A stretch of DNA of 63,123 nt, the filler included, from Bipalium vagum (taxonomy: Eukaryota), in the NCBI GenBank assembly GCA_037834085.1. It is 3 parts of 3 records of this genome, joined end to end, with 100 filler letters (N's around TTAATTAATTAA, not from the genome) between each part and the next. Parts side by side here need not be neighbours in the genome. Positions count along the whole stretch, not along the records: positions 30,474 to 46,957 come from JBBMKC010109287.1; 2 more parts are not named here. One strand, written 5' to 3'. This document shows positions 30,474 to 46,957 of this stretch, piece after piece (position 1 is the stretch's first letter; each line of letters opens with the position of its first letter). A program made the position numbers and the translations under genes. A model generated the notes under the pieces. The model did no database searches and had not been told where the DNA came from. It worked only from the letters and a program-made list of their open reading frames with translations.

Positions 30474-30885
30474 GGCTTGGAGTAAAACAACTAACGCTTG
30501 CCTTTTGTCGTTTATGTTCATCTAAAATATGAAATCTATAAAAAATTTTTAATCAATTATATATCAAATTCCAATCAACACAAAAATATCAACAAATAGG
30601 CAAAGCTGTTTTTCCATTTGACTAGGATGACCGATTCAAAATAGTCAACAATTATACGAGGCACCCGGTAGTTTTTATTATTATTATTATTAAATTATTT
30701 TTTACTATTACTATGGGGTACGAAACCCAACAAATGAAACAATTTTTAAAATAAATTATTATCTTTAATTGGATATCCTTTGCAATGCTTTCCACTGTTA
30801 TGTAATTATTGTCCAATGAATTTGATACGATTACCATGGCATATTTTCTCTGATAGAAATTTCTACCAGCCAATCATCGTCGAGG

Positions 30886-31313
30886 ATGCTTCCTCCACGA
30901 AAATTAATGCTTCCCCTGATAGTTATTATGACAGAAGAGAAAGTTTTGAACACATTTTTTTCTGTAATTGTAAATTATCTTCTCTATTTCGTCCCAAATT
31001 TTAAAAGTTTTTATTCTGTGTTCAATGTAGTCTGATTTCTGATCATACGATCGAGCTTGACTGTGACAAAAATTACAATAAAGAGAACCGAGGAAAGTTT
31101 TGGTCTGGAGTTGAGTATGTTGATTTACAGTATGTATATCATAGTTTATTGGATGTTTATTAATTATAAGGTTAATGGGAAAAATTTCAGAAAGATCTTT
31201 TGGTTGATGTTTGTCTTCAAAGCATCGTATGGCATAGCAACGGTGCCTGAATTAATAATTAAATGAACCTTTTCAACAATCGACTTCTCAAAAACCCAAC
31301 CTCTCCAAATTGA
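30886..31313 (+). pseudogene. Deleted pseudogene of the 7TM receptor family
   Basis: MLPPRKLMLPLIVIMTEEKV start, then a jump to TM5-TM7 (GLELSMLIYSMYIIVYW...RKIFWLMFVFKASYGIA). TM1-TM4 and the last intron acceptor are deleted. Most similar to the 44711-45728 copy, including its 3' flank. Confidence 0.85.
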
Positions 31314-32499
31314 GCATTGCAGCTTCGTTTACATTTTCGGTAAAATTTCATTTAATTCAACGTTTTTTCAATCAAAGAGATATTCAAATAGTTTTCAAAA
31401 ATCAACATGACCCAACGGGTGTTTGGAAACCATAGATGACCTTTCGGAAAAGACTTACTTAGAAATGTTTTTTGCTTTGAGTCCAGTCTGAAAAATGTAA
31501 TTTGATGTTGAAGGCATTCTTCAGTCGACACACCCTAATATGATGATAGCCATTTCACAGCCAAAGCGACGTTTAATTAATTAATCCTCTTTCTCTACAT
31601 CCATAATTGCCGTAACATTTCCCAAAAATTCCTCATTCCAACTCTTCTCCCATTTGACAATTGTAAGACTGGTACAGAATGGTCGTAATTGTGTTGGAAA
31701 AGATCCGGCGTCTTCAAAATTTTCTTCTTCTTTCTGAAAGGTCTTCTGGTAGAAGGGACTTCAAAAGTATAATCATCTTATAAAATATATTATTCCGTAG
31801 GTAATGAATATAATCAAATTTATTCATTCAATAAAATTTCGTGAAATATTTTTAATTATTTTATATTTTCAGAAACACGTTTCATTAGAATTGATAGATA
31901 TTTTCATTATGGATCCTGTTTTGTGTTGTCCAAGGAGATCTGTTAAAATCTCAGTGCAACAAATTCAAAATCATTCATGAGGAAAGTCCTGATATTCCTT
32001 CGGACATGATTTTCATCCAGTCAAGGTTATGATGCCCTCCAATGAATGTACATTTTAAAAGTTATGATAAAAACTGTCTCGTGTCGCTTTCAATGTTTCG
32101 GATGATGTAATTCTAATTTGCTTTGGAATTTAGGAGTTCCACGTTGAAATAGAATTATTCCTTTAGGGTTGACGATACAGTGAAATAAGGCGCTTTTCAA
32201 ACTTTATTGTCAACAAAGATTAAACGGACATTGGGCTGAGGTTTATGAATGAATCTCGTTAAACATAATGTCTTAAGAGTGACATACACAAAGAGATAAA
32301 TAAAACATGTACATATACATTACATCGGCCATGGTCAGAGTAATGGTTAGATGTGTATGAAAATCAGAAACATGTGTCTAACGAAAATTTTCGTCAAAAG
32401 AGGACACTATGATTTCTGTCTGGTGTTAAGTAGCTGGATTAATTTATCACATGTGTCGAAAATAATGGTAGAAAGTTATTATTTCAACTACGAAGTTTT

Positions 32500-33430
32500 A
32501 CCAAATCCAGTTTTCTCAATGAACGACTAAAATTTTCAACCAGACTATGTGACATATCATGTAAGTCGTAGTACCATATCTTTCCTGGAAACTAATAATA
32601 TTGTGGATGACTCCAACCAATATCTTTATCTTGGAGTGCCTCAAGGTCTGGGTAAAAGAATGTGAACAGACAAAATTCTTAACGAAATTTTGGATGATTT
32701 CCAGCGGTTGTTCAAATCCCACCTTCATCCCGCCTAGAAAATAGAATGTTTTAAAATATTCTTACATTCTAGGCTTCCTTTTCAATTTAGAAATAGAGTG
32801 GTGGATACCCTAACATTGTCATCGCGTTTGGCTAGACAAGGAGAGGGGAGGGAAAAAGGATTAGATTTGACGAGCTTGTCAGAAAAACATTGAGATCAAT
32901 GACCGACACCGCATTGATCCAAAGTACAAATATTTCATATATGTACACCCCTACGGCACTTGGGGGTTTCGGGATAGTCCCTGCATACGATGAATATAAC
33001 ATTTGCAGTGTGATGCAGGGATTACGATTTCTGACAAGCAATGACCAGCACTGTAGGTCACTCTTGACCCGATCCTTGCTACACAATGTAAGGAAAAAGG
33101 TTTCGTATAGAAACTTCAGTCGACCTAGATTTGGCATTGAAATGGCTAAGCGATAATATCGGAAGTGATCTCAATGCTCAAAGCACCAAGGTACGAGTTT
33201 CCTCTAATCCAGAAGTATGGAATATGAATTCCTTATTTTTGAGGAGAAATTCAAGCAAAAAATAACAATGAAGTTATTTTTTCGGAAACAAGAATATAGA
33301 TGAGACCACAATGACTCTTCACCAAGGGCTGGGTATCCATTACTTCAACAGGTGGATGAGTCACGTGTGCTAAGGTCGGGTTTTAGGTTGTTCCTCAAAG
33401 AGTGTTCGATCCAATAAAATCTTGATGAAC
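32500..33430 (+). mobile_element. Fragment of an RLE-type (R2/NeSL/Utopia-like) non-LTR retrotransposon
   Basis: QYLYLGVP (RT thumb), KIECFKIFLHSRL and YMYTPTALGGFGIVPAYDEYNICSVMQGLRFLTSND (cf. LYTPxxxGGLG...KxLTSxD). Confidence 0.7.
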
Positions 33431-34949
33431 AATACACTGCCTTCTTGATTAAATCCCAGAGTAATAATTTAATTACCAATTCAGATTTTTAAAAATGATT
33501 ACTCATAGGTGAGGCTATATTAATTACTGGTTAGCCATTTTGAATATATTTGAGTATATTCATCAAATTTTATCGAAATTAATAAATTCTTGAAAATTTC
33601 TTGGGATTAATGAACGCTTTTCATCAATATTTTACAATTTTTATCCAACATTTTTAAGACCGGTATCATAATAATAATCGTTAACGAAGTGTTTTCATTT
33701 AATGATAATATCTGTAAAATTTAAGTTTAGCAGTTAAAGTAAAAAATTTATTACATTTTTAGTGAAATTTCCTATAATTAATGAACGCATTGTATATATT
33801 CATCACAAATGCTCACTTAATTTTCGAGAAGAAAATAAAAATTCTCAATCATTAGAGAATTCACAACTCCCTTAACACATCATGACTCATTTACGTTCTG
33901 GGTCATAGCTGTGAAGCTGGAAGCGAGGGGCTCTGTGCAGATCATAAAAGTCAATTCCTGAAGACACGGGCGTTTCAAAATCTGTCGTTATTAATATTTC
34001 TGCAGAAATGAGAGATTTTTTTTCTTAAAAATCTAATAAAAATTTAAGAACTAATGTTCTCAATTGTCTAAAGATGAAATTTATGCTCATCGAGCTGACA
34101 ACCACAAGGTAAATTTTGTTGGCAGATAGACTGGTGCTCACAGCCAAAACGAAGCGAATTGGAGGAAAACTATGGTGATCTCTTAAAATTATATCTAAAT
34201 GAATGAAAGTCGCTCTAAAATATTCAATCGGGAAACTGCGAATCAATTTTTTATTTAATAAATTTGTAAAAAGAAAATTATTTACTTTTGTTAATTTTTG
34301 TGATTCGCTGCAAGTCTCTTTTTTGACCGATCAATCGTTTCAAGTATGTTTATTGACAGAGTCGGTCAAAAAAAAGATCCATTCTATTTTATCTATATAT
34401 TTTTTTAATATTGATTTTTTGGTACTTTTATGAATATTTTACACTATATCTATCCCCCAGTTATAAAAATATTCAAATGAAAAATTTACTAAAGTGTTAC
34501 CGAGTTTTTCACAATTACAATTTGTTTTGAAAATTTATGCATCGTTTGTTACCGAAAAGTAAAAAAATAATAAATAATTATTATTGCAAATAAGTTATAA
34601 TGATTCTGGGCATTCAAGTACGGTGAAAATATGTTCTTTTCTTGTAATCATTGTCTTTCCGGTAAAACAATCTAAAAATCCAAATACTATCAAAACGGTA
34701 TGATACATGATTTTGGACTTTAAATATGAACATTTTACAAAACAGGAATCGAAACTTCGATGATTACATAACAGAAAGTTTTCAAAAAATATTACCATGA
34801 CTTTTGATTGAATAAAATGCACAAAACTTATTATTTTGTACTCTATTAATATAGATTATAAACAAAAATAATTTAAACTGCATTTTATGAAAAATAAATC
34901 TGCTTTTAATATAATTAATTTTAATAAAAAAAATTCTCGTTACATAAAT

Positions 34950-36920: not shown

Positions 36921-38476
36921 AACTTAACCTGTTAAAAATCATTTAAGTCATTGACACATGTCATAAAACTAAATATATCTTACTTTTTGTACTTTTTTTA
37001 ATCTCCACCATTGAATATCTCGAATTTCATGTGCTCCTAAAGTTATCTTTATTTTACTAGATTTTTTTCCTTTTGAATCTGTAACAGTTATATCTATTTT
37101 ATTGTTTTTTCAGTAATATTAAAAATGAAATTTAAAGTTGTAAAATAAATTAAAAATAATTCATAGCCAAAATTTGGATCAATATTTTGAGATTTATCTA
37201 AATTAAATGTTAAAATCTAACTCTTTACTTTTCTCAATAAATGTTGAATATTTTTAAGAGAAGAGATTTGATATTATTTGTAAAGATACTTCCGTAGTAA
37301 AAAATAAAATATTTTAATCAGAATGTAGATCAAATTAAACTTTAATATTTTCACAATAATCTTTGGTGATATTTTTTGCTTTTTTAACTTTTAAAATTAA
37401 ATAATCAAGATTTTCATGACTAGCTTTTTAGCAGACAAATATTTTTCTAGTTTATAAATTTGTCAACTAAGTATTTTGACAATATATAGCCATTCCTATA
37501 GTTTACTAACCTATCACATTGGTTTTTAATATTTTTAGTTTGCTCAGCTCTAAAATTACTATTTATATATTTTATTAAATCTAATTAATTCCTCACATCA
37601 TTCAAGATATAGGTTACGCCATTATCATTTATCATAGCTATTAAATCTTTATGTTATTTTTAATTTTTACGGGGGATCAAATATTTATTTTTCTATACTG
37701 CTGAGGAAATTTTTTCGAACAGTTACTATTGTTTGTAAAATTGGTAACTGTGTATGGAATGAAATCTATCCATAATATATATACAGTATCTAATCATTAA
37801 ATAATGTTTCTAAGATAAAGCCGAATCGGTATAAATTTTTTGTCACAAGTTAATCGCATAGTTATAATTATCAGAAACTATAATAAAATCAATATTAGGT
37901 GTTTACAAAAATATATCACACAAAATCAATAATTAGAAATATTTACTATAATGAAATTATATAAAGGAAACACGGTGTTACTTTTGACGCTCTTTGTATC
38001 ATGTAAGAATTTTTGGAGTGTTCTAAGCACTTAAGAAATACAGGTTAAATTTATTTATTAAAAATATTAATTTACTTTAATGATTTATGCCAATATGGAA
38101 ACCATGGCATAAAATTGTCTTAAACCAATTTCAAAATTATGTCTGTCACTGTTTATCAAGTTCGATATTCATTACCAAAACCAATTTGAGATACTCTAAT
38201 AAAGGAGCTATTGAAAGCGTCTATCATTTTACTCTCAAAAGTAATTATTTTCTCAGCTTCCTTTGTGAATTAAATATTTATAACATTTTTGTAACATGGT
38301 TCTCGGAATGAAATTGAAAATTTAAAAAATTAATTACATTCTCAAAATTGGGTAACCCTTGAAAATATTTGACTGTCTCGAAATAATTGCCAAATGAAAT
38401 TAATACAAATTCTCTTTGACATCTTTTATCCGTCTAAGAGTTAGAATGATTTTCTACAAACCAATCAAAATCGAGA

Positions 38477-39486
38477 ATGCCTGCTATTCTAAAACTGATG
38501 CTTTTTCTGCCATTTATTATGCAACAGGAGAAAATCTTCGAAGATATTCTCATTTGGTATTCTTTAAGCATCATGTTGTGCTTTTTTGGATTTTTTACCA
38601 ATTTGTGGTGTGGTTTAATAATCGTCTTATCCAAATCATTATGGAAATCTCCCTTTTATAGAATTATCCTTGTCATAATCATCTCCGGTCTCATAATTAA
38701 TTTAATTTGCATCCCATTTGAATCAACACAGACTTTTCTGAAAATCCATAAAAATCAGATTTTTGGAACCAATCTTGGCTGCATGGTGGAAGGAACGATT
38801 TTTAATGTGGTTGTAGCCATATCAAACATGAATAAAATGATTGCGGCTGGATATCGAGCCTGGGGCGCTGTGTTCCCCTCAAAATATTATCTGATTTCCA
38901 ACATGAGGGTATTTATAATTTTGACCCTGACAATATCATTTGCTCCGCCAATTGTATTTTTTGTTTGTTGCGCCAATACCCTTGTCTGGTACATTGTGGA
39001 TCCAACTCTAGGGAACTGTTATGAAATATCTCCAAATATGGCAGTCAGTTTATTTATAAATCTTTTTTTTCTCTCATACCAGTACTCATAAGTTTTTTAT
39101 TCTATACATCCATTATAATCAAATTTCTGATGATAAAAACAGATTTTAATATGAGAAAGAACACGTTGAAAAGAGCTAGGGGCTCTTTGGGTTTAGGGCT
39201 GACGTTGTTGATTTACGGTTTGTGTATTATAGCTTACTGGATTGTTTTTAGTTCTAAGGAAAATGATTTTAGAAAGATTATATTGGTACAGTTTACCCTC
39301 AGAGCATCTTTTAGCATAGCACCGGTAAGTGAATTATTGATACTTTGTGCTTATATGAGACTTTATTTTCAGTTGTTCTACTTAACTCTCGACAAAAATA
39401 TTCTGAAGAGTTCGAAAGACTTTTTGAGAAACTCGAAGAATCGTTCAGACAACAGAGTTTCCGAAAATCCGACCACTACTTTCTGA
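38477..39486 (+). CDS. Orphan rhodopsin-class 7TM GPCR, copy 1 (apparent 1-nt frameshift in a T homopolymer)
   Basis: Exons 38477-39324 and 39373-39486, with a 48-nt GTAAGT...TTTCAG intron. Seven hydrophobic segments, N1.50, C3.25, GYRAW (DRY position), P5.50/Y5.58 and spliced APLFY (NPxxY). One extra T at 39063-39070 joins the two ORFs colinearly with copy 2. Confidence 0.85.
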
Positions 39487-40064: not shown

Positions 40065-42257
40065 CATGGTTTCCGCATCTATGGGTCGCGATTCCAAATG
40101 GGGTCCATAAGAGTTTTTTGGGGGTCGCCAAAAAATAATTTGAAATTTAAAATATTTTAAATTATTTAAAATTGCATGTTTGTGTTTTATTATTCATTTT
40201 GTAAAGACAATATTTCAAATATTTTAAAATTTTTTTAAACTTATTATCATGAAAGTATATTTAGTAATTAAAAGTTTTATAATAAATCACTTATCTAAGT
40301 AGCGCTTTACTTTGTGGTACAATTTAAAAAACTATTGCATAATCATCATATAATTTACCACATGTACCACATAAATTTTGATGACATTATAAATTATAAT
40401 TATAACCACACAAATAGGATCGAATCAATGTGGTGGCCGATGAAGAATTGGTTTTGGAAACGACAGCCGAATGAAGAGGCATTTGAGGCCACTTTATGAG
40501 AATATCTCGCCAGACGGGAATGGCGCTTAAATGGTGTCGATGGCGTTGAAGAGTTGCTACGATATATACGGGATTATTATACCATTTCATAGAATAAATT
40601 TTGGTAGATTAAATAAATCAACATCAAATAAATTTAATTTTACCACTTATTAATTGTTGTTAATTTAACGATTGTGAAATGATTACATACAAACGTAATT
40701 TTTAAAATTGTACCACAAAGTTAAGCGCAACCGAAGTAAATCCATATTTGATATAATCTGGATCATATACACGTTTTCTAGTCATAGTTTGTGTTTTCTA
40801 AATAGATAAGGGTTGCGCTTTACTTTGTGGTACAATTTAAAAAATTACGTTTGTATATAATTTTGATGGAAATTAAAATTTCACCTTTACTTGCATTGCC
40901 GGTAGACAAATCAACGGATAAAACTTCATATGCTCAATTGCTTGTCTTCGTAAGGTATATTCATTTAAAAGAAATGAAAGAAGAGTTGTTATTTTGTAGA
41001 CATCTAGAATCTACTGCTCAAGGAGAAGATATTATGAATACGATTAATAATTTCTTTTTACTGAATGAATTGGATTTTGAAAAAAATTGTGGAATTTTAC
41101 GGAATTTGCTCCAGCTATGCTAGGATCAAATTCTGGTTCTCTAAAGAGAGCAAGAGATTATGATACTGAAGCCAAAGGTTTACACTGCATGATTCAACGA
41201 TGTGCTCTAGGTTGTAAAACTTTTCTAAATCCAAAGAAAGAGGCACTTGATTTTTTGATCAGAATAGTAAATTACATAAAATCTGGATCTCTAAACAGTC
41301 GTCTTTTTAAGCAATTAAACAAAGACATGAACTCTGATCACGAGGTGTTTTTTTATTTTACTGAAGTGCGATGGTTATCAAAAGGAAATATGGTTGGTCT
41401 AATTTATGAGTTGAAAGAAAACATCAAAAAATTCATAGAAGTACACGAAAATATGAATTTGCGGTATATTTTGATGATCAGTCTTGGTTGTGTAGAATCA
41501 CTTATCTATCAGATATATTAGAACAAGAAAATATCCTGAATCTTAGATTAAAAGGAAGAGATTTAACTATTATTGAATTTCAAGATAATCTTAAATCATT
41601 CATAGCCAAACTGCAAAACTGGCGAAGTAAAATGGATACAGGAAACATGATAATGTTTGAAAAACTATCCAGTATAATAGAAGAGTTTAAATGTCAATTT
41701 AAATATTTTGAAAATGAGCTTGTGTATTATTTCTTTTAAGTTAACTAAGGAAGAAGCTTTACTGGTGAGATATCCATTTTCTGATTCCATTGATATATCC
41801 AGTATTCCTGATGATGTGAAAAATGAATTCTTGAAATTTCGGCTTTGATTCTTATATGACAAAAATCTGCTAACTCAGTTCTGGTGTGCTATGTATCACT
41901 TATATCAAAAAGTCACAATGATTGCGTTTAGAATTTTACTTCCCTTTGGTTCAACATACCTATGTGAGAGTGGATTTTCAACACTTCTGTAATTGAAAAG
42001 CAAAGCAAGAAACCGACTTAATGTTAATGCCGAAATGATGTTGGCATTAACACAAACGCAACCACGTATTTTAAAGTTAGTCAATGAGTTACAGTATCAA
42101 CAGTCTCATTAAGATTTGGTGATTGAATAAATGTTTTGTTATTAATAATAAATTATTAGTAGAAGTAATTGTTATTGTATTTTATATATAGTGGGGTCGC
42201 CAACATTTGTTTGGTTCAAAAATGGGGTCGCGATACCAAAACGGTTTGATAACACTG
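40065..42257 (+). mobile_element. hAT transposon, Buster/Charlie (ZBED8-like) family, defective
   Basis: Perfect 8-bp TSD CTTTAAAA (40057-40064 and 42258-42265; NNNTANNN pattern), CA(G)TG termini and subterminal GGGTCGC repeats. Transposase motifs LPVDKSTD, APAMLG, HCMIQR, EVRWLSKG and FGSTYLCESGFS. Confidence 0.95.
40298..40732 (+). mobile_element. Merlin (IS1595/IS1016-like) deletion derivative nested in the hAT; extra end at 40811-40857
   Basis: TIRs GGTTGCGCTT(T/A)ACTTTGTGGTACAATTT. The interior encodes the ISXO2-type C-terminus HTNRIESMWWPMKNWF...EAFEATL*EYLARR. Confidence 0.85.
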
Positions 42258-44710: not shown

Positions 44711-45728
44711 TCAATTTGAAGAAATGTGGTTTTCGTGAATTCGATTGTTAAAAAGGTTCGTTGGTTTCTTGAGGAAAGCTTTGCAATTCTTCAAAATATT
44801 TCTGTCGAGGGTTATATAAAACAACTAAAATAAATTAACTTATTTCATCACATTTAATTATTAGTTCACTCACCGGTGCCATACCATACGATGCTTTAAC
44901 GATAAACTTCAACCAAAAGATCTTTCTGAAATTTGTCCCATCAGCCTTGTTATTAAAATTCGTCCAGTAAACCACGTTACACATAGCGTAAATCAACATA
45001 CTCAACCCCAGACCTAAACTTCCTCTGGCTCTTTTTAATGTGTTTTTCCTCATTGTCAAATCCGATCGTATCATCAGAAATCGAACAACGATAGACAAAT
45101 AACATAAAAAGCTTATAAAAATCGGGATGAAAAAGAGAAGCAAATTTACAATTACTGTCACTGCTAAATTTAGTAACATGTCGGCACAGTCTCCCAGAAT
45201 TGGATCTATAATATACCAAATAAAGGTTTTAGTGCCGCCAACAAAAAATAAAAATACTGGAACAAAGGAAATACTTAATATCAAGATTGTAACTATTCTG
45301 ATCTTTGAAATTATGTGATATTTTGAAGGGAGTACAACGGCCCAGGCCCGGTATCCAGCCGCTATCATCTTACTCATATTCGACATAGATACACCTGCAC
45401 TTAAAATTGTTCCTTCAACCATGCAACCAACGTCGTCTCCCAAATTCCTATTCCAATAGATTTTCAAAAAGTTCTGAGTCGTTTCAAATGGTATACAAAT
45501 TGCGTTAGTTATGAGATCGGGAATGATTATGGCAAGGATTATTCGATAAAAGGAAGATTTCCATAATGATTTTGATAAAACGATTATTGAGCCGCACAAT
45601 AAATTACCAAGAAATCCAAAACAGCATATTACAATGCTTAGAATATACCAAATTAAAATATCTTCGAAGACTTTTTCTTCTGACATAATAACTGCCAGAA
45701 GCAGCATGAATTTTAAATGAGGAAACAT
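44711..45728 (-). CDS. Orphan rhodopsin-class 7TM GPCR, copy 2, intact, with Lys at the opsin retinal-binding position
   Basis: Exon 45728-44874 (the start could instead be MSEEK), 49-nt GTGAGT...TTTTAG intron, exon 44824-44711 (LFYITLDRNILKNCK...SSN*). Motifs GN1.50, D2.50, C3.25, R3.50, P5.50/Y5.58 and KASYGMAPLFY. Confidence 0.9.
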
Positions 45729-46957
45729 CCTCGACGATGATTGGCTGGTAGAAATTTCTGTTAGAGAAGAAAAAACCAAGGTAAGCCTTGAAGTGAAATC
45801 AATTAGACAATCATTAAATGACAATTCAAAACATAGAAAAGGATGTCCAATTAAAGAACTTCATTAATATATTTCACAAATTGTTTAATTTTTTATAATA
45901 ATAGTATTTATAATCATTAGTAATAATAAATAAATAAAATATTTTCCAGTAAGATTATTGTTCTTCATCTCTAATTAAAACCCGAAAATAAATGATGTGA
46001 GCCAATCAAAATATCAAATGCTCAAAGACATGACAAAGTCATTTTGCAACATAACAACGCTTGGTCACATGTTTCATGAATTTTAAATAATGACGTACAA
46101 CCCTACCTACCGCATCTGCAATACATTGATTCTTATGACTTTCATCACTTTCAATTGATGAGTTATGCCCTAGACGATGTGTAATTCTAATCTTAATAAA
46201 AAGCTTTTTATCAAAATTAAACAAAGATTAATAACAAGAACAGTTTATAGAATTAAAAATTAAAGGAGGAATATGCCTAATATTGAAACAAAAATGAAAC
46301 TTGTAGAAAAACCACATCGAAAGTAAACGATATCATTTAATTATTTTGATAAATTGAAACACCTTCCACAACGTATCCATATTAATAAGAAAATGAATAT
46401 AATAGTAATAATTTTTAAGAAAGAATTCCAAATTTTTAGTGTAACTACAGATAAAATTACAGGTTTATTACAGGCTCATGGGTCTGTATTTGAGTGAGCT
46501 TATACTTCTGAGATTTGTAAAATTCAATTTATCAATATTTTTAAACTATTTTATTGATGTATTTGTACAATCCCATCCATATGTTTTGGACCATCTCTAA
46601 AATTTCGATAAAATGAACATAAATAATTATAAGTACTTTAATCCTGTCTATATTTAAATAAATGATAGAATATGTTGAAATTTATGTTTCCAATCAAAAA
46701 TCCCCAAAGTAAAATGTTTGTAAATGTAGAAAAACCAATTTGTTCAGAAACATCAATTTTTAATTCATTTTGAATACAAGACTAAAACGCCAATAAAATA
46801 TCTTTTATTTACATGTCAAATAATCAAACGCATAATAATAAAAATTCAACCTGATGAAAAATCGCGATACTCGAATTCAATACCTTGTACTCATGCCTTT
46901 ATTTTTAATGACCTCTTGCATCCTTCTTGGCATGCTTTCATATAGATTTTTAATTTT

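Follow-up and report, generated by a model that had tools for sequence, protein, structure and literature searches.

The D/ERY, CWxP, and NPxxY motifs are typical of class A G-protein-coupled receptors (GPCRs), although they are not obligatory, and positions 3.28 and 7.43 are neighbors in every class A structure. Among the animal opsins, bovine rhodopsin has K296, E113, and E181, which correspond to a lysine at 7.43, a glutamate at 3.28, and an acidic residue in ECL2. The role of E113 as a counterion is a feature of vertebrate visual opsins. Arginine is unable to form the retinal Schiff base.

Lysine at 7.43 was found in just 2 of 1084 non-opsin GPCRs (Gühmann et al., PMC9368030). The nematode nemopsins (sro-1), which belong to the chromopsin clade, combine R7.43 with a conserved NPxxY and have a presumed role in chemoreception (PMC9368030). 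In flatworms, the PROF1 family comprises lineage-restricted, strongly diverged rhodopsin-like orphans that lack clear BLAST homology to known GPCRs and include many paralogues as well as fragments resembling pseudogenes; its genes are reported to have no introns, and its motifs are D[R/K][C/M] in TM3 and N[F/G]xxY in TM7 (PMC3261222, Table 3). The nematode Srx and Srsx chemoreceptors (PF10328 and PF10320) evolve in tandem by birth and death. The aminergic and peptide receptors of class A, including the H2, alpha1A, TAAR13, CCK-A, NPY1, opioid, and somatostatin receptors, gave the best profile matches (E 2e-19 to 1e-12) and the best fold matches to the receptor reported here.

The receptor gene, referred to as copy A, lies in the window, which is the whole stretch of 63,123 nucleotides (filler included) analyzed from the genome of Bipalium vagum. 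The preliminary description of this locus noted the three opsin-like residues and offered two readings, namely a photopigment or retinal-binding lineage and a chemoreceptor-type orphan with chance opsin-like residues. The second fits the evidence. The best explanation overall, held with good confidence, is that copy A is an intact, divergent class A orphan of an unnamed, lineage-restricted family, that it is not an opsin, that its extracellular pocket is charged, and that it is probably of the chemoreceptor type.

Gene model and tandem copies

Copy A is a two-exon gene on the minus strand of the window (45728–44711), and reading and translation of its open reading frame (ORF) gave 285 + 37 amino acids. 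Exon 1 (44874–45728, minus strand; 285 amino acids) begins at the first in-frame ATG at 45728, runs through TM1–TM7, and ends with the codon of Pro7.50 (44876–44874). It is supported by the ORF, by the seven helices of the AF2 model, and by 17 homologues. The intron (44825–44873, minus strand) is 49 nt long, is in phase 0, reads GTGAGT...TTTTAG, and separates Pro7.50 from the following xxY. Exon 2 (44711–44824, minus strand) encodes 37 amino acids and a TGA stop, begins with LFYITLDRNILK, and provides the LFY of the APLFY motif as well as helix 8. Unspliced read-through of the exon 1 frame leads to a stop 11 codons inside the intron.

The 49-nt intron had been proposed in the preliminary description, and this gene model is upheld by a local paralogue, by the donor sites of relatives, and by one transcript, so that a splice at 44873/44825 is predicted from sequence comparison. 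The intron of paralogue B is 48 nt long (GTAAGT..TTTCAG) and occupies the same codon boundary. The intron lengths thus differ (49 and 48 nt), yet both frames resume as LFY[I/L]TLD[R/K]NILK, and exon 2 of copy A is 61% identical to that of paralogue B over 23 aligned amino acids. In the contigs of five relatives from other samples (L001–L005), the Pro7.50 codon is immediately followed by GTAATA, GTAAGT, GTAAGT, GTAATT, and GTAAGG, and the predicted proteins on these contigs run into the intron as "NPVS/NPVI/NPVR". The polyadenylated transcript L006 of a distant relative reads an unbroken NPVFYYF... (NPVFYYFANKQMRAAY). The B. vagum genome is AT-rich, with about 30% GC, and its introns are roughly 50 nt long. 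The only public run that contains the locus is not an RNA run; its exact contigs tile the gene, and one of them (44801–44938) crosses both the intron and the Lys codon and matches the window at every base. In all searches, alignments, and folds, the two exons were handled as separate sequences. The opsin-like signature had been described as visible only after splicing, which does not hold. The Lys, the Glu, and the ECL2 Asp are all encoded in exon 1, and because the spacing from the Lys to P7.50 lies there as well, the signature is independent of the splice.

Two further copies of the gene are present in the window, and the earlier remark that the lineage is locally expanded is correct. Paralogue B (38477–39486, plus strand) has the same two-exon layout, carries Arg at 7.43, and shows 62%/58% amino acid identity to copy A. 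Its frame shifts near 39065–39075, within a T-run, which may reflect either a genuine pseudogenising mutation or an assembly error in the homopolymer. Because the 48-nt intron of paralogue B keeps the frame, a simple ORF scan runs through it. Copy C (30886–31310, plus strand) is a decayed fragment with 80% nucleotide identity to copy A and 73% to paralogue B, and its Lys7.43 is kept. The region from TM1 to ECL2 (about 500 nt) is gone from copy C, where the first ~25 codons run straight into TM5–TM7; the intron and the beginning of exon 2 are also missing. With one intact, one frameshifted, and one decayed copy, this tandem cluster evolves by birth and death.

Pairwise alignments revealed a conserved block immediately upstream of the ATG that is common to all three copies. 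It is located at 45729–45760 (minus strand; TTTCTACCAGCCAATCATCGTCGAGG) in copy A, at 38446–38476 (plus strand) in paralogue B, and at 30856–30885 (plus strand) in copy C. Copies A and C agree at every one of the last 30 nt, and paralogue B keeps the core TTTCTAC.A.CCAATCA...TCGAG(.ATG). This block, with its CCAAT-like core, is a candidate promoter or 5'UTR element common to the family. Among 64 aligned contigs from the run that bears the locus, 27 were 90–95% alike to the gene. The summed contig depth was 270–400 over the TM3/ICL2 coding region (45313–45546) versus about 25–35 elsewhere. The 90–95% contigs and the depth peak over TM3 point to a good number of further close paralogues elsewhere in the genome that have this segment in common.

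Between the receptor copies, three adjoining ORFs of 98, 144, and 83 amino acids in shifted frames (40827–41739, plus strand) look like a broken transposase-type gene. This sequence presumably resembles hAT/FAM200-like elements; Pfam gave nothing for these ORFs at E<=0.01. A second stretch (32474–33473) has a GC content of 0.38 versus about 0.25–0.30 around it and contains overlapping ORFs of 88 and 101 amino acids on opposite strands. A Pfam search of these ORFs found nothing, and the stretch may be a repeat-element remnant.

The state of the cluster bears on whether copy A itself is a functional gene. Both of the other local copies are broken, and the DRY, CWxP, and NPxxY switches of copy A are all degenerate, as would be expected if it were a non-functional or dying gene, that is, an unexpressed recent pseudogene whose residues have no functional meaning. 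This explanation is unlikely, although it survives better than the other rivals considered below. The frame of 285 + 37 amino acids is uninterrupted and bounded by canonical splice sites, the model fold is confident, and copy A still has R3.50, D2.50, N1.50, P5.50, Y5.58, and the disulfide cysteines. In addition, the dN/dS of copy A versus paralogue B is 0.23, with a dS of about 1, which shows purifying selection across most of the A–B divergence.

Family membership and comparison with described receptors

An exhaustive phmmer search with copy A of 1.84 billion proteins, which are representatives at 50% identity, yielded 17 relatives (E 3e-48 to 7.5e-4) with identities of 23–36%. All 17 representatives derive from unannotated assemblies; those that were looked up are unnamed, lie on short Logan or ENA contigs, and are nearly all single-member clusters. 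A word-indexed protein search with exon 1 returned no relative, and the corresponding search with the family profile had P0014 and P0019 among the matches listed. P0017 is doubtful and was left out of the family profile as a non-member. P0015, a distant member, lies on the polyadenylated L006 (1–1159; GC 0.53; run ERR4677224), and the family is therefore expressed in at least one further organism, whose base composition differs greatly. A paper on the coral microbiome (PMC13083261) cites the run that yielded P0019. Among the sample accessions searched for papers, ERR14224704 alone gave a link, to a coral-microbiome study.

Pfam contains no family that matches exon 1 (E<=1), exon 2, or either piece of paralogue B. 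A single-sequence search of the PDB with copy A gave FFAR1 alone, at an uninformative E of 0.25. Because the protein by itself has no Pfam match and reaches FFAR1 only at this value, copy A is assigned to class A through the family profile and the fold. Pfam 7tm_1 (PF00001; best 1.1e-45) matches 14 of the 18 members in the alignment, the Srx chemoreceptor model matches 13, and Srsx matches 4. With P0017 excluded, the family profile matched 99 solved chains in the PDB at E<=1e-10. The best matches were the histamine H2 receptor (H2R; 2.2e-19), the alpha1A-adrenergic receptor (alpha1A-AR; 4.4e-17), TAAR13, CCK-A, and NPY1R, and the best 60 further included the neurotensin, neuromedin-U, NPFF, QRFP, orexin, 5-HT, and dopamine receptors. 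Opsins were absent from these best 60 profile matches. In the HMMER alignments, C-x-x-E of the family falls on C3.25...Y3.28 of H2R, its NR on DRY, and its C-x-x-P on CWxP; the ECL2 cysteines are paired with each other, and NP falls on the NPIIY of alpha1A-AR.

The predicted structure points in the same direction. AF2 with the family alignment folded exon 1 into seven helices with a pLDDT of 88.4 and a pTM of 0.85; the model covers exon 1 and ends before the last TM7 turn and helix 8. ECL2 forms a beta-hairpin in this model, with strands at residues 170–174 and 181–185. The best PDB matches in Foldseek were opioid, somatostatin, QRFP, TAAR, muscarinic, and adrenergic receptors (probability 1.00; TM 0.65–0.75), and opsins were absent from the 48 matches listed. 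ESM-Atlas features matched 7tm_1 clusters only. By shape, ESM-Atlas gave generic class A clusters, including an arthropod 'Rhodopsin (Fragment)' cluster with a TM of 0.80. This match has no power to discriminate, as tyramine, TAAR, and olfactory receptor clusters are its equals at 0.73–0.81. On the basis of the family profile and the model, copy A is a very divergent class A GPCR of a small, lineage-restricted, and unnamed family.

Copy A shares with the aminergic and peptide receptors the seven helices, the ECL2 hairpin, and the class A anchors N1.50, D2.50, the C3.25/ECL2 Cys pair, R3.50, P5.50, and Y5.58, which were located through the family and the H2R and alpha1A alignments. In contrast to these receptors, it has no D3.32, W6.48, or P6.50, and it has GYR (NR in the family) in place of DRY and APxxY in place of NPxxY. 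The TM6 of copy A reads C-N-V-V at 6.47–6.50, opposite the CWfP of H2R. The microswitches of copy A are thus GYR, CNVV, and APLFY, while those of the family at large are NR, C-x-x-P, and NPxxY, and none of the canonical D/ERY, CWxP, and NPxxY motifs is found in copy A. Residue reading bore out the earlier list of atypical motifs, namely GYR, the missing CWxP tryptophan, Lys3.43 (residue 120), and APxxY. The family has its own set of E3.28, K7.39, R/K7.43, and GDC, and its identity to aminergic and peptide receptors is just 14–18%.

The motif K-R-A-[RK]-G-S-[LM] is strongly conserved at the junction of ICL3 and TM6, where copy A has KRARGSLG at residues 230–237 (about 45020–45041, minus strand); it is missing from P0017. 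This motif may serve as a phosphorylation site or in contact with a G protein or arrestin.

The family resembles Srx and Srsx in its partial model matches (13 of 18 and 4 of 18) and in its tandem birth and death. In contrast, copy A matches neither model, and the family scores on them are below those for 7tm_1; the overlap is probably a general class A similarity. The likeness to PROF1 lies in the lineage restriction, the divergence, the many paralogues, and the pseudogene-like fragments. Membership in PROF1 was rejected by comparison with its published motifs and its lack of introns, as the present family has a conserved intron after P7.50, NR or GYR in TM3, and NP or AP in TM7.

The nemopsins raise the possibility of a family that was derived from opsins and turned to chemoreception, in which an ancestral Lys7.43 was replaced by Arg and copy A later reverted. 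Most members of the present family likewise carry Arg7.43 and NPxxY and have a presumed chemoreceptor role, as do the nemopsins (PMC9368030). Such an origin is nevertheless quite improbable. The aminergic and peptide receptors outrank every opsin in the PDB profile search, and no tie to opsins was detected at the sequence level. In the comparison with the nemopsins, which was made by published features only, position 7.39 of the family is Lys, versus a Pro that is conserved in chromopsins, and the equivalent of R314 in helix 8 is Leu (PMC9368030). A non-opsin orphan lineage of class A remains the preferred reading.

Position 7.43 and the opsin-like residues

The positions of the opsin-like residues given in the preliminary description are accurate. 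Lys278 (codon 44895–44897, minus strand) is at 7.43, seven residues before Pro285 (P7.50), and Glu105 (codon 45414–45416, minus strand) is at 3.28, three residues after C3.25; both codons had been placed correctly to the base. The spacing of exactly 25 residues between C3.25 and R3.50 was also right, with C3.25 at residue 102 and R3.50 at residue 127. The latter (codon 45348–45350, minus strand) stands in GYR in copy A and in NR in the family and aligns with the DRY arginine of H2R and alpha1A-AR. The ECL2 motif WYIIDPILGDC (residues 171–181; 45186–45218, minus strand) is present with the claimed Y-x2-D-x5-C spacing, lies inside the beta-hairpin, and follows a family consensus of Y..D...GDC. 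Glu is found at 3.28 in 12 of 16 family rows, and this column pairs with Y3.28 of the histamine H2 receptor in the HMMER alignment. Copy A is therefore like the opsins in having Lys7.43, Glu3.28, an acidic 181-equivalent, the same spacing to C187 and to R3.50, and a class A fold.

The TM7 of bovine rhodopsin reads FFAKTSAVYNPVIY. Of the ungapped TM7 match to bovine rhodopsin that had been reported, the identical K/N/P/Y spacing stands, but the string quoted for rhodopsin was nearer to a cone opsin. A TM7-only profile of the family matched no PDB chain at E<=10. The visual likeness of this helix to opsins is thus without statistical weight, since its profile matches no solved chain.

The relatives differ from opsins at the decisive position. 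Across 17 rows that cover TM7, comprising relatives, paralogue B, and copy A, the residue at 7.43 is most often Arg (11 rows), followed by Lys and Gln (2 rows each) and by His and Trp (1 row each). The two Lys carriers are copy A and P0005, and P0005 has Leu at 3.28. The lysine of an opsin is thus present in copy A as Lys278, is not kept among its relatives, and is not accompanied by the W6.48 of CWxP. At the DNA level, copy A is 80% identical to copy C, which bears Lys, and 72% identical to paralogue B, which bears Arg (TM7 FTLRASFSIAP). By nucleotide identity, copies A and C are sisters, and paralogue B and P0001 lie outside. Because paralogue B and P0001, the nearest outside relative, both carry Arg, parsimony argues that Lys7.43 is derived through an R-to-K change on the A/C stem. 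These comparisons suggest that Lys7.43 in copy A is a recent replacement of the Arg found in its relatives and that the Lys of P0005 probably arose independently. The R-to-K exchange is unremarkable where a basic residue is the family norm at 7.43. Glu3.28 and the ECL2 Y..D...GDC appear to be family-wide traits that are mostly paired with Arg7.43, not a chromophore counterion system. In addition, the triple signature is no ancestral opsin state, because the E113 counterion is a feature of vertebrate visual opsins.

It is nonetheless unusual for K7.43 to occur together with E3.28 and an acidic residue in ECL2. All three residues are present with exact spacing, the gene is intact, and its lineage is under purifying selection. 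The rarity of K7.43 outside the opsins was rightly pointed out in the preliminary description (2 of 1084 non-opsin GPCRs; PMC9368030). It could be argued that the A/C sub-branch, with a buried Glu3.28 counterion and an acidic ECL2 residue already present, gained, through the Arg-to-Lys change, the capacity to bind retinal or some other aldehyde as a Schiff base and became a convergent light sensor. If true, a GPCR that carries a covalent chromophore or senses aldehydes would have arisen independently of the opsins. This genuine photopigment is the least probable of all the explanations, and a role of copy A as a light sensor is very unlikely, as the family consensus is Arg7.43, the Lys is a conservative and derived change that P0005 carries without E3.28, W6.48 and P6.50 are absent (CNVV), and opsins are missing from the best 60 profile matches and the 48 Foldseek matches listed. 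The retinal-binding lineage of the preliminary description is thus not borne out, and a non-opsin orphan family with a varying residue at 7.43, which that description had itself named as refuting evidence, was found.

A proposed charged pocket and its meaning for the family

The preferred reading, a divergent class A orphan that is not an opsin, allows a mechanism to be proposed for the conserved charges. K7.39 is conserved in the family (WxKFxFR), and GDC is nearly invariant. E3.28, K7.39, R/K7.43, and the two ECL2 aspartates beside the disulfide Cys would line the orthosteric pocket. Within it, E3.28 and R/K7.43 could pair as a salt bridge between TM3 and TM7. This ion pair would be akin to the E113–K296 lock of rhodopsin, minus the chromophore. 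A polar or charged diffusible ligand may then break or bridge the pair. A basic residue occupies 7.43 in 11 of the 12 rows with E3.28 and in 2 of the 4 rows without it, although the rows are not phylogenetically independent, and this covariation of 3.28 and 7.43 is suggestive only. Because the GYR, CNVV, and APLFY switches are degenerate, signaling by copy A may be atypical. The expansion pattern and the Srx-type similarity favor a chemosensory or other environment-facing role, which copy A might serve.

These results have a consequence for the annotation of opsins, in that K7.43 together with E3.28 is insufficient when the gene family has Arg at this position. The family represents a rare class A lineage in which a conserved intron interrupts NP|xxY and the charged set consists of E3.28, K7.39, R7.43, and GDC.
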